DNA from: Octopus bimaculoides
Lineage: Eukaryota
Length of the DNA: 64,000 bases
NCBI RefSeq assembly: GCF_001194135.2
Contig: NC_068996.1
Location: forward strand, 47,035,405 to 47,099,404
Direction of reading: 5' to 3'
Shown: positions 3,600 through 45,399 of the stretch, piece after piece
How positions within the stretch are numbered: position 1 is the first letter of the stretch
Layout of the letters: each line of letters starts with the position of its first letter
The notes under the pieces: model-generated
Seen by the model: only the letters and a program-made list of their open reading frames with translations
Databases searched by the model: none
Told to the model about the DNA's origin: nothing
Translations under genes and position numbers: made by a program

Positions 3600-4880
3600 C
3601 CTATCCTGTCCGTTCCCTCCTTCAAACGACCCCATAACCTGTGTGACCTCCTGGTCCAGTTTCTTCCCTACTCCCACCTGCCAGCCTGGTTCCTTTCCCT
3701 GCTCCTGCCCACACTGCTTCTACCTCTCCAACACCCCCACCATCCTCACAGGCATCCATCACTGACTCCTTTACCTAGACCTCTAGTAATGTTATTTACT
3801 GCATCTTCAGGTCTCTCTTTTCTTCCCGCTTGTTCTGACTGGTTCGTGGAATACCTCCAAGACATCAAACTCGGCAATGACATCCAGGTCTCGCACTACT
3901 TCCACTCTACTGGTCATTCACTGCAACATCTGTCTGTGTTCAGAATGTCTTCGTTCCTTTGCTCCATATTGGCTCAACTCACCTACTCACTTCATCTGAC
4001 ACCAACCCCACATGAATTCTCACACACTTCTTACATTCAACTGTCCCCTCCACCTACACACCTTCATACCACCTACCTTGGTACCCTCATCATACACAAA
4101 CCACTAAACAAACAACCATACATACTGTTCAACTCATTACTCATTTCACACACCATTACACACACACATACCAACAAACACTTTCCCACTCCACACACAT
4201 TGGCACCAACAACTTCTCAGCACCCACACCACACACAATCTTTAATAGTGTCACCTCACATATCACTATACGTGCAGCCCCACACACTGTTTAACTCAGT
4301 ACACACACCACACACCATCATGCACACTCCCACATCCACACAAGCACATAATACCTGAACACAAACAATATATACATACATGCATAAACATATGCAACAT
4401 GCATAAACACATAACTTTTGCCCACAAGCATACACTATATATATGCACACTAATTGGTCATACACACACACAGACACACACATGCATGTACACTCACCAT
4501 TTGAAAAAGCACATATCAACTGCTACACACAACACACACATTACACATGTACACACACACACACACACGCGCACATGTCAGACTCACTCGCCCCCATTCA
4601 CACATACATACTCATACACACAATTCTCACATACACACACACACACACATGCTCATGCACGTTAGTTTGTTGAGATCACCATTATTATCTTCCTTTCATT
4701 CAACCTCTTTTTTATTATTATCTCCCTTTCATTCAACCTCTTTTTCTCCCAGTCATATGCCATGATGGACCGCTGAACTCTGCACTGTTTTTTTCTCTCT
4801 CTGTATTTTTCATTCTCTCTCCATTTTTTCTTTCTTATTCCTTTCTTTGGAAGAGCGTAGGCTCAAAACATAAATTTGAA
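3600..4880 (+). mobile_element. Degenerate Penelope-like (Neptune-type) 3' remnant: GIY-YIG endonuclease plus terminal repeat region
   Basis: Translations NLCDLLV (3636), TDSFT*TSSNVIYCIF (3761) and DWFVEYLQDIKLGNDIQVSHYFHSTGHSLQHLSV resemble PLE GIY-YIG motifs. The 4755-4875 segment is shared with 13925-14110 and 43945-44090. Confidence 0.65.
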
Positions 4881-6074
4881 CTATATATTATACGCTCACC
4901 TGGTTACCCTAGATTAATCCTGCTCGACTGAACTTCTTACTTCCTTGGACTTGCATCTTAACTACTTCCCGAACTTTCAGCACCTCACTTCATCCACATA
5001 CTACCTGGATTGCACAAGAAACTGGTAGGGAAAATGATAAGTCCTAGGGTTAACTCATTTGACTAAAAATTCTTCAAGGTGGTGCCCCAGCATGGTCGCA
5101 GTCTAACAACTGAAACAAGTAAAAGATAAAAGGAAAATTATGACATTTGTTTTAATAAATGATTTTTGCAAGTATTTCATTTGATTTTCCTCTTCAGTAT
5201 TGGGTTTTAGGTAGGGATTTTTTAATTTCTATACTTTTAAAATAATGTTCAATGAGACTTAGATAAAATCAGATAAATTGACTCAAGTTTAGGTAGGTTT
5301 ATTACTTAAAAATGTGCTCCAGTATGGCCACAGACTTAGGTCTGAAACATATAAAAGAATAAAAAAAAAGACAATGACATAAAGTCAAAAAAGACAAAAC
5401 TCAAAATGACATCCGTTGAGGTATACTTGTGATTCTTTCATTAATTTTAATCTCAGTTGTATATAGCCCACAACATCATTTGCCAACAGTCTGTGTTTTC
5501 TCTATTGCCAGAGCCTATGGGGTAGAAGACCACTTGTCTGATAATAATAGAAAATAGATAAAGCTACAGTGAATTAACATCTCAGTGGCACCACCAACCT
5601 GTCTTTGCTTCCGTGAGAGCTTCTAGATGGTTTCTCAGTCTACTTGATATAGCAGTTTGATCTTTCTTCTTGGCCTTGAGTTGTCCAGGTTTGTGTGGGA
5701 GTGACATTTGGAAGTTGGAAAGTATGGAAACCTGTTGGAAAGCTTGTTTGGGGAACTGTTACTGTTCTTGGGTGGCGGTGGTGGTGGTGGTCTTAATTTT
5801 CTGCCTTGTTTAACGACACCAGGTGGCTCGTGCAGTATCTTTAATGCAGTTTACTAGCTTGCAAGCATTTAGCTAGATCTCTAATCATTTCCTCCCAAAA
5901 ATTGTGGAGGCCTTGAAGGCATCTTCTGAAAGAAAGAAATCAAACCCTACTGCTTTAAATAAAGATATAATGGACAATGTGGACTCTTGTGGACTGTCCG
6001 GTTGTAATATTTGACTAGGTGCAGGTGCAGTGGGTGTATTTGATATACGGAAACTGAAATAAGACCGTTACATA

Positions 6075-41716: not shown

Positions 41717-44700
41717 TTATGTTGAGTGACATATTTTTCCTTTATGGTATCACATTGTGCGTAGCTGTTTATATTAATTTTTGTATATATATATATATAT
41801 ATATATATATATATATATAAATTTAATAATGAGGGTAGAAATTGATATTAATCAATTAAAACCAGTGGTCTAGCATATTTAAAAAACTCCGAAGATTAAA
41901 ATTATATTACATACAAAATTAAGAGGAATGACCACCAAAAGTGGACTCCTATATGCTAGAAATAGATGCCAAATCACTTCGTGGTTAGGTGATTTGGCAT
42001 CTATTTCTAGCATATAGGNNNNNNNNNNNNNNNNNNNNNNNNNNNNNNNNNNNNNNNNNNNNNNNNNNNNNNNNNNNNNNNNNNNNNNNNNNNNNNNNNN
42101 NNNNNNNNNNNNNNNNNNNNNNNNNNNNNNNNNNNNNNNNNNNNNNNNNNNNNNNNNNNNNNNNNNNNNNNNNNNNNNNNNNNNNNNNNNNNNNNNNNNN
42201 NNNNNNNNNNNNNNNNNNNNNNNNNNNNNNNNNNNNNNNNNNNNNNNNNNNNNNNNNNNNNNNNNNNNNNNNNNNNNNNNNNNNNNNNNNNNNNNNNNNN
42301 NNNNNNNNNNNNNNNNNNNNNNNNNNNNNNNNNNNNNNNNNNNNNNNNNNNNNNNNNNNNNNNNNNNNNNNNNNNNNNNNNNNNNNNNNNNNNNNNNNNN
42401 NNNNNNNNNNNNNNNNNNNNNNNNNNNNNNNNNNNNNNNNNNNNNNNNNNNNNNNNNATATATATATATATATATATATATATATATATATATCTTAATA
42501 ATACTAAAATTCTAGGGATGTTTGTTTGTACCAAAATATCTCAGAAGTAGTATATTTTATCTTAATTCTTTTTATTTTCATACTTACCTTCAGCAGTGCA
42601 GTACAAATTTTTGTGGCATTTGGACCTCTATTTGTTAATGAAAATGAGTAAACAATTTTTGTTTGTTATTTCTTGAAAAAACACATGGCTTTCATGATGT
42701 CAACACACATAGACACATACAGAATACACACACGTGTAATGAATATCGTGGTGTGTCAATCAACACAAACACACATCAGTTATCTGTGACATATACACAC
42801 AGTCTTCATGCTCTCTAAGAAAAAACAACGTCGACTTTTTGATGTACACAATTTTTTAATCATTTAGAAATATTTTTAACTGAATGTGATTTCAAATATG
42901 TAAGTTGGTTGTACAGTAAGTGTTTATATTTTAGCTTTCTTTAAACAGACAATATTTTAATGGTTTTTAAAATTATTTTTGAGTCATTAATTTCCGTAAA
43001 ATTTATTTATTTATTTACTTTTGTTTTAAAGCGAAAGAGAGGAGAAAGTGAAAGATATATGTAGGTGTATATGAAATGTGTGTGTGTGTGTGAAAGAGAG
43101 AGAAAAAGTGAGAGAGGGAGAAAGGGAGAGTGAGTGAAGGGGTGTGTAGTCATGTATACGTACATACATCAATACATATGCATAAATCTTTTTTGTATGT
43201 ATGTGTGCATGTGTGTGTGTGAAAGAGAGAGAGGGAAAGAGAGTGAGTGAGTGAATGTATGTGTTCTCATGTATGTATAAGTGGCACTCTCTCTCTCTGT
43301 CTTACACACACACACTCATGTCCATTTTTTACAGAATTTAACAAACAAAACCAGCTGATCTGGTTGACAGTTCTGAGAGGCAAAGTGAAAGATCACCCTA
43401 AGGGAAAACCATTACAAAAATTTTTTCAAGGGCATTCAACATATCTTGGCTCCAAAAATTTGGCTGCTATTTCTAGCACGCCTTTCCACTACATGACAGC
43501 TATTTGCGATAAAGGACCCAAAATACCTATTACATGGTAGCAGGGCATGCAAGAAATAGCAGCCAAATCTTTCCTTTTTCTTGGGAAAGGAGCCATTTAT
43601 GCGTGATTTTGATGTGACATTCATTAAAAGCATGCAAAATAACCTGGAAAATAAAAAAAAAAACCCATGAAACAAAACTCCTTTGCTGGGAAACTCAGAC
43701 TTTCCAGATGACTCAATGGGTCACGGGTTGTCTACTATATATATATATATATATATATATATACATATATCAAATTAAAAATTTAAAAGAGAGTTTTGAC
43801 GCTGATATCCATTATTATTGAAATTTATTCCTATGTTAACATTTCTGTATAAGGCTATATTTTACTGTCAAATTCAAGTCAAATATATAATTTACCTTAC
43901 ACATGTGTGTATATATACAAGTAGTGTTGTTTATATTTTATTTTCTCTCTTTGTTTCTTTCTGTGTTCCTTTCTGTGGAAGAGCATAGGCTCAAAACGTT
44001 AAAGACTTTTTCACTTCTCAAGCATTAAACTAATACATCTGTTTGTTGTCTAGACCACCTGTCTTCGTCTTTTGTTGTGAATTCTCCCTATATATATATG
44101 TGTGTGTGTGTGTGTGTGTGTGTGTGTGTGTGTGTGTGTGCTGCTATCTGTTGGGACCTTTTTGTTGCATGTGTATGTGTCTGTATGTTGTGATGCATAT
44201 GTTTGACTCTCCTTAGCTCAGTAGTTACAACTGTTACTGACATACAGGTGGTGTCCTTCGTTTCCAGTCTTTCTGTATAAACATGTTGGGCATTGGCAAA
44301 ATATCATCTTACTTGGAAACAAGTGAGGTGTTGGTGATGGGAAAATCTGCATCATTGAATTCCATCTGATGCATGGAAGCTTGCAAACCTTCATATTAAA
44401 ATGATGATGATGAGGGAGAAGAAGATATAAGTATATCTATTTATTATTAGTGATGCAAACAGTATTAGTCTCAAAATAGCATTCTGCATATATCTTACCT
44501 CACTCAGATATGTTGTTGAAAGCCACAAAACTGTAGTATTCCTCTTAAGGAAAAATGAGTGATAAAATGCACAGAAGTAAATCAGTAGCAGACGGTGATA
44601 GATTTGCTAAATCATGATTTCAAAATCATTTTTGAGAATCATCAGCAGTAAGAATCGACTTATCAGCTGCATTCTTAGGCGAATTTCTTGATTTACCAAT

Positions 44701-45399
44701 TCCACTGCTTCTGCTGAACAATTTTGATCTACTGCTGATATACTTACTCTTTTACTTGCTTCAGTCATTTGACTGCAGCCATGCTGGAGCACTACCTTTA
44801 GTCGAGCAAATCGACTCCAGGACTTATTCTTTGTAAGCCTAGTACTTAATCTATTGGCCTCTTTTGCCGAACTGGTAAGTTACGGGGACGTAAATGCACC
44901 ACCACCAGTTGTCAAGTGATGTTGCGGGGGACAAGCACAGACACACAAACACATACACATACATACATACACACATACATATATATATATATATGTAAAT
45001 GTATAAAAATAAAAAGATAAAGAGAGCAATGGTAAGGTTGGAGAAGTATTTTATGGATAGAGTCTTACAGCTGTTTCTGGGAAGATCCAGTACTTCCCTT
45101 CNNNNNNNNNNNNNNNNNNNNNNNNNNNNNNNNNNNNNNNNNNNNNNNNNNNNNNNNNNNNNNNNNNNNNNNNNNNNNNNNNNNNNNNNNNNNNNNNNNN
45201 NNNNNNNNNNNNNNNNNNNNNNNNNNNNNNNNNNNNNNNNNNNNNNNNNNNNNNNNNNNNNNNNNNNNNNNNNNNNNNNNNNNNNNNNNNNNNNNNNNNN
45301 NNNNNNNNNNNNNNNNNNNNNNNNNNNNNNNNNNNTTAATGGTCAGTTGATCTTACAGGATAGAGGGGATGAGCATATAGAGAGAAGGAGGAATGGGGG

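Follow-up and report, generated by a model that had tools for sequence, protein, structure and literature searches.

Minimal type I hammerhead ribozymes (min-HHRs) are an established component of Penelope-like elements (PLEs), in which they lie in pseudo-long terminal repeats (pLTRs), bear a palindromic helix III and persist mostly as solitary motifs left by truncated elements (Cervera & de la Peña 2014, PMC4209133). The same study records 'dual min-HHRs … (~100-700 bp) but in opposite strands', and pLTRs, inverted 5'-truncated copies and a bias toward microsatellites are described for PLEs in PMC8557442. In Octopus vulgaris, PLEs are an annotated order of transposable elements (TEs) with an old expansion (PMC13282606). 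The animal non-LTR retrozymes form tandem arrays, dimeric up to large multimeric ones, of ~150-450 bp units that carry a canonical type I hammerhead and are expressed as circular RNA (circRNA; PMC7229834). Self-cleavage by a double hammerhead was demonstrated for newt satellite 2 and avocado sunblotch viroid (ASBVd) by Forster et al. 1988, as cited in PMC4209133. No report of hammerhead motifs in cephalopods was found in the searchable literature. Here we describe a 64-kb stretch of the Octopus bimaculoides genome (NCBI RefSeq assembly GCF_001194135.2, contig NC_068996.1, positions 47,035,405 to 47,099,404, forward strand), referred to throughout as the window, in which a reading made from the sequence alone (the sequence-only reading) had reported about ten hammerhead motifs.

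The best explanation, to which we give a probability of roughly 0.85, is that these motifs are minimal type I hammerheads from the 3'-terminal or pLTR region of PLEs and from short derivatives of such elements, inserted repeatedly and in both orientations in two host introns. The resemblance to the published PLE ribozymes (PMC4209133) extends to the type I topology, helix I being open and 4-6 bp long, to a very short, loop-less and palindromic helix III that implies action as a dimer, to the presence in one genome of many sequence families with compensatory changes, to the predominance of solitary copies accompanied by opposite-strand pairs a few hundred bp apart, and to a position near the PLE 3' end or pLTR. 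The kind of ribozyme proposed by the sequence-only reading, namely a minimal type I hammerhead of the PLE or retrozyme sort with a short palindromic helix III, is supported.

The sequences reported earlier are present at 10/10 coordinates; these are the positions of the opening base of helix I, and they agree with the starts of covariance-model hits. The estimate of about ten motifs stands as far as their reality is concerned, but the count rises to ~17 hammerhead-derived sites when remnants are included, of which 3 are complete, 1 is ambiguous and ~13 are mutated or truncated. Four sites were missing from the earlier list, at 34018-34073 (+), 31430-31464 (-), 27982-27999 (+) and 46407-46475 (-). 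The inventory is as follows, in order of position.

4845-4874, plus strand: family F copy, CUUUGGA … AAA ACAU.
8894-8938, plus strand: family A, complete, UCUGUG CUGAUGA A GGG AAAUAA CCC A GAA AUCGCGAU A CACAGA, where helix II has an A·A mismatch at its base.
8939-9102, plus strand: tail of this family A copy, homologous to 33946-33784 (-).
13458-13503, plus strand: solitary motif of ambiguous register, with an intact core, a 5-bp helix II and a descriptor score of 13.5.
14016-14047, minus strand: family F copy, UUCCUUU CUGUGGA A GAGC GUAG GCUC GAA ACAU U AAAG, three helices present, position 6 = U.
23984-24036 (motif 23995-24030), plus strand: family E, CUGAUGA, a bulged A, GGUUGG…UCAGCC, GAA, ACGU and U, with the 3' strand of helix I lost.
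27982-27999, plus strand: family C remnant, just GAA, ACAGCUGU and A left (E 0.18 in the custom covariance model).
30936-30995, minus strand: family B, complete, AUUACA CUGAUGA U GGA…UCC U GAA AUCAAUUGAU A UGUAAU, with a tail to 30778.
31277-31464, minus strand: upstream partial copy of family B, 86% identical and offset by 499 nt.
33947-33991, minus strand: family A, complete, UACG CUGAAGA AGGG AAAUAA CCCU GAA ACUCGAGU A CGUA, with a tail to ~33748 and then (TA)n.
34018-34073, plus strand: degenerate hammerhead, CUGAAAA (G8 to A), head-to-head with 33947 (-) and 26 nt from it.
37456-37526, plus strand: family C, GAA changed to GUA and helix II disrupted; the element 3' end abuts (CA)n.
41227-41267, minus strand: family D, hammerhead-like motif with an intact core, a bulged helix II of 5 bp, an imperfect hairpin (ACGU loop) as helix III and a weak helix I.
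41584-41624, plus strand: inverted partner of the preceding family D copy, GAA changed to AAA, one arm of the inverted repeat 41227-41624.
43973-44004, plus strand: family F copy, CUGUGGA … AAA ACGU U AAAG.
44604-44651, minus strand: solitary motif, CUGAUGA…GAA AUCAUGAU U, with no helix II adjoining the core.
45062-45101, minus strand: family C, cut by a gap, GA A GGGAAG…CUUCCC A GAA ACAGCUGU A AGAC.
46407-46475, minus strand: solitary candidate beyond the range of the sequence-only reading, CUGGUGA (A6 to G)…GAA AUGUACAU A, descriptor score 11.

The exact core C3 U4 G5 A6 N7 G8 A9 … G12 A13 A14 is present at 8894, 13458, 23995, 30936, 33947, 41227 and 44604, and mutated cores are found at 34024 (G8A), 37456 (A13U), 41584 (G12A), 46407 (A6G) and throughout family F (A6U). 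The full set of type I features (helix I open and 4-6 bp long, 3-4 bp in helix II, 8-10 nt in helix III, A15.1/U16.1 and A17) is seen at 8894, 30936 and 33947 only. No more than 3-4 of the ~17 motifs still look able to cut RNA. The earlier description of the sites as CUGANGA…GAA cores followed by a palindromic stem III needs correction at several of them: the GAA box reads GUA at 37457 and AAA at 41581, the element at 44604 has no helix II by its core, the one at 23989 lacks the 3' strand of helix I, and helix III at 13458 is palindromic in a qualified sense. In the first register of 13458, helix III is AUAUGUAU, which is self-complementary only via a G·U pair and places G at position 17; in the second, it is AUAUGU, a 6-nt helix III with a G·U pair that gives A17 and a bulged helix I.

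Several copies are visibly incomplete. The family B copy at 31277-31464 retains the 3' part of the ribozyme only (31430-31464), being 5'-truncated, and has lost the helix III palindrome. The AT-rich tail of the 34018 module is present twice (34033-34255 and 34311-34533, period 278 nt), each copy ending in (TAA)n. At 45062 the first 5 core bases and helix I fall in the gap 45102-45335, the far side of which does not continue the motif; no other motif in the window touches a gap. The candidate at 46407 has a helix I of 5 bp and a helix II of 5 bp closing a long loop. Local density looks high, at ~1 intact-core motif per 14 kb and ~1 remnant per 3-4 kb, in a window that was itself selected for density. 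The O. vulgaris and O. sinensis DNA retrieved via the PLE open reading frame (ORF) described below has 7 motifs or remnants in 41 kb, 3 with an intact canonical core.

Could such motifs arise without any hammerhead ancestry? One hypothesis is that the boxes co-occur by chance in AT-rich repeats, or that they belong to C/D small nucleolar RNAs (snoRNAs), which share UGAUGA and CUGA boxes. Weak, sub-threshold C/D snoRNA hits do lie over 30936, at 16.8 bits where the gathering score is 45, and sites 20316, 6236 and in part 44604 score within the shuffle range. However, motif density far exceeds that of dinucleotide-preserving shuffles, one of the comparisons by which the sequence-only reading had proposed that it could be refuted. 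The pattern CUGANGA-N(6-45)-GAA with a Watson-Crick palindrome A…U of at least 8 nt directly behind it occurs 4 times, against a mean of 0.04 in 300 shuffles. With the further demand for H17 and for at least 3 bp in helix I and 2 bp in helix II, 3 real sites stand against 0.013. A first descriptor with uninterrupted helices recovered 33947 alone and was too strict. The relaxed scored descriptor, which tolerates 1 mismatch in the core, a bulged helix I and an unpaired base flanking helix II on either side, returns 4 sites at a score of at least 12 (0.03 in shuffles) and 7 at a score of at least 8 (0.32 in shuffles). Among 7 sites chosen by the core boxes and helix II alone, 3 have an 8-10 nt palindrome right after GAA where ~0.03 would be expected, and the palindromy is therefore not an artefact of selection. 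A CUGAUGA box at 31744-31720 (-), antisense within an endonuclease ORF fragment, is a chance core match with no surrounding hammerhead, so the 7-nt box alone is uninformative.

A custom covariance model (R1) was built from two window copies (8894 and 33947) and two O. vulgaris copies of the same architecture and was run unfiltered; it covers neither family D, E nor F. MAFFT could not align the families structurally, and a single model for all of them was dropped. The custom model finds 8 sites at E<0.01 in the window. The copy at 30936, which lay outside the training set, scores 36.8 bits (E 8e-10), followed by 37456 (1.2e-4), 34018 (1.7e-4), 13458 (8e-4), 45066 (1.2e-3) and 44604 (4e-3), while the 63 bits obtained for 8894 are those of a training-set member, as 33947 likewise is.

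Pair counts over 9 model-aligned sequences support the helices: 84% of cells pair, against 62% after shuffling, and the covariation score is 0.49 against 0.17 in shuffled alignments (0/500 shuffles as high) and 0.05-0.10 with slid partners. The statement that stems differ in sequence yet keep pairing is borne out by changes on both sides in 10/13 pairs, with compensatory changes in all three helices. Enrichment over dinucleotide shuffles of at least 100-fold, these compensatory changes and the recurrence of the motifs in two other Octopus genomes beside a retroelement ORF all argue against the chance and snoRNA readings, which shuffles, covariation and the custom model exclude for the top-scoring sites; the snoRNA hits lie far below threshold. 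We regard origin by chance or from snoRNAs as hardly tenable.

Self-comparison and alignments group the sites into at least six repeat families, which accords with the several distinct families proposed earlier. Family A comprises 8894, 33947 and the related module 34018; family B, 30936 and 31430; family C, 37456, 45062, 27982 and two O. vulgaris copies; family D, 41227 and 41584; family E, 23995 together with O. vulgaris and O. sinensis copies; and family F, the CUGUGGA copies at 4845, 14016 and 43973 with an O. sinensis copy. Sites 13458, 44604 and 46407 are solitary. The helix III palindromes represented are AUCGCGAU, ACUCGAGU, AUCAAUUGAU, ACAGCUGU, AUCAUGAU and ACGU. In family A, where 33784-33986 and 9102-8899 are 69% identical over 212 nt, AUCGCGAU and ACUCGAGU differ at 3 pairs and are each a perfect palindrome; helix II and its loop are identical except for the unpaired base 3' of helix II, and helix I is wholly different between the copies and still paired. 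Family E shows 1 compensatory G-C to A-U change (in helix II), 1 wobble-preserving change and 3 disruptive changes, the pattern that would be expected of decaying copies.

The CUGUGGA-core family reported by the sequence-only reading is real, with copies at 4845-4874 (+), 14016-14047 (-) and 43973-44004 (+). Family F keeps helix I (CUUU/AAAG), the bulged A, helix II (GAGC GUAG GCUC), GAA/AAA and ACGU/ACAU, and has U at core position 6 in all copies, including the O. sinensis copy (CCGUAGA; locus L006 16140-16355, 81% identical). Because its changes from GAA to AAA and from ACGU to ACAU both fall at CpG sites, methylation-driven decay is suggested.

The short palindromic helix III makes a specific prediction about dimers, and RNAcofold returns a double hammerhead as the minimum-free-energy homodimer of 8894, 33947 and 30936. 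In each, an intermolecular helix III duplex of 8-10 bp is accompanied by helix II hairpins and by helix I formed in trans, with a free-energy gain over two monomers of -8.9 kcal/mol for 8894, -10.7 for 33947 and -3.4 for 30936. The same arrangement is described for the dimeric transcripts of newt satellite 2 and ASBVd, in which two copies pair via a weak palindromic helix III to create two active sites; helix III there has a small loop, in contrast to the loop-less helix III of the window.

The link to PLEs is most direct for family E, whose motif at 23995-24030 lies 138 nt 3' of the stop codon of an ORF remnant and ~55 nt before the element 3' end. The retroelement ORFs concerned are these.

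23456-23857, plus strand: PLE ORF remnant, putative GIY-YIG-type endonuclease region from the C-terminus.
31651-31744, plus strand: second endonuclease-type ORF fragment (…YVGETARSIGERANEH…), which runs into the gap 31745-32734.
34714-35130, minus strand: ORF remnant with a match to the part of PLE-ORF relatives that Pfam assigns to HTH_animal (E 0.002 to P0054 and P0063).

The ORF at 23456-23857 shares 88% identity with a protein of O. vulgaris and 85% with one of O. sinensis. Its relatives number hundreds in one assembly, and in them Pfam RVT_1 and HTH_animal stand upstream of a shared C-terminal domain; one is named GIY-YIG endonuclease by JGI, and the motifs VYSIPCSCG…YKGET…R…EH fit a PLE endonuclease, as judged by eye. 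A family E ribozyme stands at the same relative position in 2 O. vulgaris copies (one of them inverted, ~1.3 kb away) and in 2 O. sinensis copies, such that across copies it lies ~140-250 nt past the ORF stop and ~55-90 nt before the end of homology. The best-preserved copy, from O. vulgaris, reads GACAC CUGAUGA A GGCUGG…UCAGCC GAA ACGU U GUGUU. Family E is the published PLE min-HHR in its bulged base after A9, G10.1-C11.1, 6-bp helix II and palindromic ACGU (PMC4209133). The PLE-ORF relatives at loci L003-L005, which come from a different ENA assembly and from a JGI contig, have neither a hammerhead nor a conserved 3' region and were not informative. The fragment at 31651-31744 has weak tblastn matches from 37 relatives. 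A link between the ORF at 34714-35130 (-) and the hammerhead at 33947 (-) was considered and rejected, as microsatellites and plus-strand elements intervene.

Head-to-head inverted pairs, 26-362 nt apart, are found at 33947/34018, at 41227/41584 and at 6767/7141 of locus L007; an inverted 3'-end copy lies at 7824-8006 of locus L001. Partial tandems occur at 30778-31464 (499 nt, of pseudo-LTR type) and at 34033-34533 (278 nt), and element 3' ends abut (CA)n, (TA)n or (TAA)n. The head-to-head pairs, partial tandems and microsatellite-flanked 3' ends match published PLE architecture (PMC4209133, PMC8557442). The copies in the window are old, and their decay agrees with the old PLE expansion reported for O. 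vulgaris (PMC13282606). The families had been described as non-autonomous, a label that is not supported: family E is attached to a putative PLE endonuclease ORF remnant, and the other families could equally be 5'-truncated 3' ends of autonomous elements.

Several observations weigh against derivation from PLEs. Family E alone is physically attached to a PLE ORF, and families A, B, C, D and F are linked by architecture only. In families A-C an unpaired or mismatched base (A·A, A-U or U·U) stands on both sides of helix II, unlike the published PLE consensus of a single 5' bulge plus G10.1-C11.1 (PMC4209133); their helix II is 3-6 bp long, and the helix III palindromes are also long, at 8-10 nt. 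The GIY-YIG fold of the 23456-23857 ORF has no significant match in Pfam, NCBIfam, PDB phmmer or a PDB profile search, its AlphaFold model (pLDDT 65) has no Foldseek match at E<0.5, and the GIY-YIG-family protein 1zg2 appears among the fold-search matches only at E 2.6. The covariation alignment, of 9 sequences, is a fit to the model, and it constitutes supporting evidence, not proof. Finally, Rfam gave no match to hammerhead models, either at the gathering score or at E<=10, in the whole window and in three short stretches (111-301 nt); the motifs share the catalytic core and type I connectivity of Hammerhead_1 (RF00163) and related models and still fail to match them. The Rfam miss is expected for loop-less minimal variants but still counts as a failed test; a closed helix III hairpin and canonical loops are what the curated models look for. 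The whole-window Rfam list consists mostly of microsatellite and inverted-repeat 'miRNA' matches.

The two partial tandems invite an alternative hypothesis, in which family B (499-nt unit) and the AT-rich 34018-34533 unit (278 nt) are non-LTR retrozymes whose hammerheads would monomerise a multimeric transcript, the monomers being ligated into circRNAs and recopied by PLE enzymes. Each unit begins at or in a hammerhead, the sizes are in or near 150-450 bp with low GC, as in PMC7229834, and the conserved units are short (~200-250 nt) with no attached ORF. AT-rich units of a few hundred bp with a type I hammerhead, and direct repeats, are likewise described for animal retrozymes (Cervera & de la Peña 2020, PMC7229834; Li et al. 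2026 preprint), for which an origin in PLE pLTRs has been proposed, and the U·U mismatch at the helix II base is known from the axolotl HHR_Amex2 (PMC7229834). However, the direct repeats, with periods of 499 and 278 nt, amount to 1.4 and 2 copies, nowhere forming the multimeric arrays of retrozymes, and in the upstream copy of each pair the core is absent or mutated. Moreover, the ribozymes are minimal, with no loop 1 and none of the loop 1-loop 2 contacts by which canonical retrozyme hammerheads are defined (PMC7229834), and autonomous PLEs, too, normally insert as partial tandems (PMC8557442). We therefore consider a retrozyme identity of these two units unlikely; since retrozymes are argued to derive from PLE pLTRs (bioRxiv 10.64898/2026.07.22.740005), it would in any case be a sub-case that overlaps with the PLE explanation.

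The location of the motifs in the introns of one gene, as proposed earlier, is supported by two exons with AG/GT boundaries and a colinear esterase match.

9295-9465, plus strand: host exon of an alpha/beta-hydrolase (ABHD11/YbfF-like) gene, acceptor …cttgcag and donor gtaagt.
50960-51142, plus strand: next host exon, acceptor …cattgtag.

Joined as one query, the two exons match the solved esterase 7c4d colinearly (query residues 1-117 to residues 110-228, E 2e-9), and they also match E. coli YbfF weakly; exon 9295-9465 as a lone protein query found no homologue. The canonical boundaries and the single colinear match identify them as consecutive exons of an ABHD11/YbfF-like gene. The ~41.5 kb between them would be a single intron, given a correct scaffold. 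Neither the nucleophile-elbow exon (G-x-S-x-G-G) nor the catalytic-His exon turned up when the window was searched for them. The preceding intron holds the motif at 8894 (+), which is 357 nt upstream of the splice acceptor of exon 9295-9465. The proposal that the hammerheads are transcribed as part of host pre-mRNA can apply to the five sense motifs, namely the plus-strand copies at 8894, 13458, 23995, 37456 and 41584, but not to the 5/10 listed motifs that are antisense to the gene, which include 2/3 of the complete ribozymes (30936 and 33947).

Could the host have recruited the sense copies? Intronic cleavage-based regulation has been proposed for conserved intronic hammerheads of amniotes. 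By analogy, 8894 and 13458, both with intact cores and sense to the gene, would regulate expression by cutting the ABHD11-like pre-mRNA inside its introns, and the proximity of 8894 to a 3' splice site would suit such a role. However, the motifs belong to dispersed repeat families with antisense copies too, a minimal helix III confers very low activity on a monomer (PMC4209133), and there is no match to Rfam HH9/HH10 or to other hammerhead models. Recruitment of these motifs by the host is, for these reasons, highly improbable.

How the PLE-derived hammerheads would act can be outlined from established knowledge of hammerheads and PLEs. A PLE transcribed through a partial tandem would give one transcript carrying two ribozyme copies. 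The helix III of a lone copy would be too short to fold alone, and its palindrome would let two copies pair into a double hammerhead, each core cutting 3' of position 17, such that the multimeric transcript would be trimmed to unit length. Solitary copies would have no partner in cis and inverted pairs would form hairpins instead of double hammerheads; most copies would therefore be inert passengers of the intron.

Inverted repeats occur at 33954-34055, 41227-41624, 40333-41174, 48278-48480, 55891-56081 and 63815-64000, where Rfam reports sub-threshold microRNA (miRNA) precursors of plants and animals (MIR399, MIR4208, MIR6135 and MIR2599). The repeats at 33954-34055 and 41227-41624 are head-to-head hammerhead-bearing elements, and the sub-threshold 'miRNA' matches at 33954-34055 correspond to the hairpin of the 33947/34018 inverted pair. 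The other four look like hairpins of miniature inverted-repeat transposable elements or of transposons. Intronic inverted-repeat hairpins could serve as substrates in the form of double-stranded RNA (dsRNA).

The window is AT-rich and filled with other repeats as well. By far the commonest is a repeat of ~250-450 nt that resembles a short interspersed nuclear element, with at least 20 copies (for example at 24412-24876, 28161-28572, 44744-45004, 45770-46258 and 61188-61662); it often stands beside microsatellites and is unrelated to the hammerhead families. Tc1/mariner-type transposase remnants lie at 6127-6504 (-), 11460-11736 (+), 49250-49809 (+) and 40591-40773 (-); Pfam DDE_3 is matched at 6130-6477, and the remnant at 11460-11736, which begins at a gap edge, is a mariner-like C-terminus. 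Two ORF fragments at 35695-36019 (-) and 47719-48129 (-), 75% identical to each other in DNA, resemble the reverse-transcriptase C-terminus of long interspersed nuclear elements (…RLRWYGHV…).

The assembly of the window is interrupted by 19 runs of N. About half of these gaps (~10/19) have microsatellite-type simple repeats on their flanks, and for this reason they resemble breaks in a short-read assembly. At 57650-58522, an array of tandem repeats with a period of 93 nt contains the gap 57863-58015, across which 58016-58166 repeats 57712-57862 at 100% over 151 nt, and this gap may be an assembly artefact within the array. The 17-nt string cccctattctaaactaa occurs on each side of the 10-N gap 28866-28875, not directly at its edges, and the gap looks like overlapping contig ends left unmerged.

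PLE-associated min-HHR relics are an already known and ordinary kind of genomic debris. If the explanation given here is true, the known association of PLEs with minimal hammerheads extends to octopus, and little else changes. The Rfam hammerhead models would once more have missed the loop-less minimal class. In practical terms, annotation should treat such motifs as relics of TEs and not as genes or miRNA-like hairpins, and the three complete copies together with the family consensus sequences are candidates for a cleavage assay. Family F, amplified with a non-canonical core, provides a small data point on whether PLEs need the ribozyme. There is a slim chance of a wider consequence, either through family F, whose master copy, if competent, would be a natural hammerhead with a non-canonical core and, if not, would attest to PLE-type amplification without catalysis, or through a genome-wide density equal to that of the window, which would place octopus among the most hammerhead-rich genomes. 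Were that density (~1 intact core per 14 kb) to hold across the genome, sense copies would lie in many long introns and inverted pairs would supply dsRNA.

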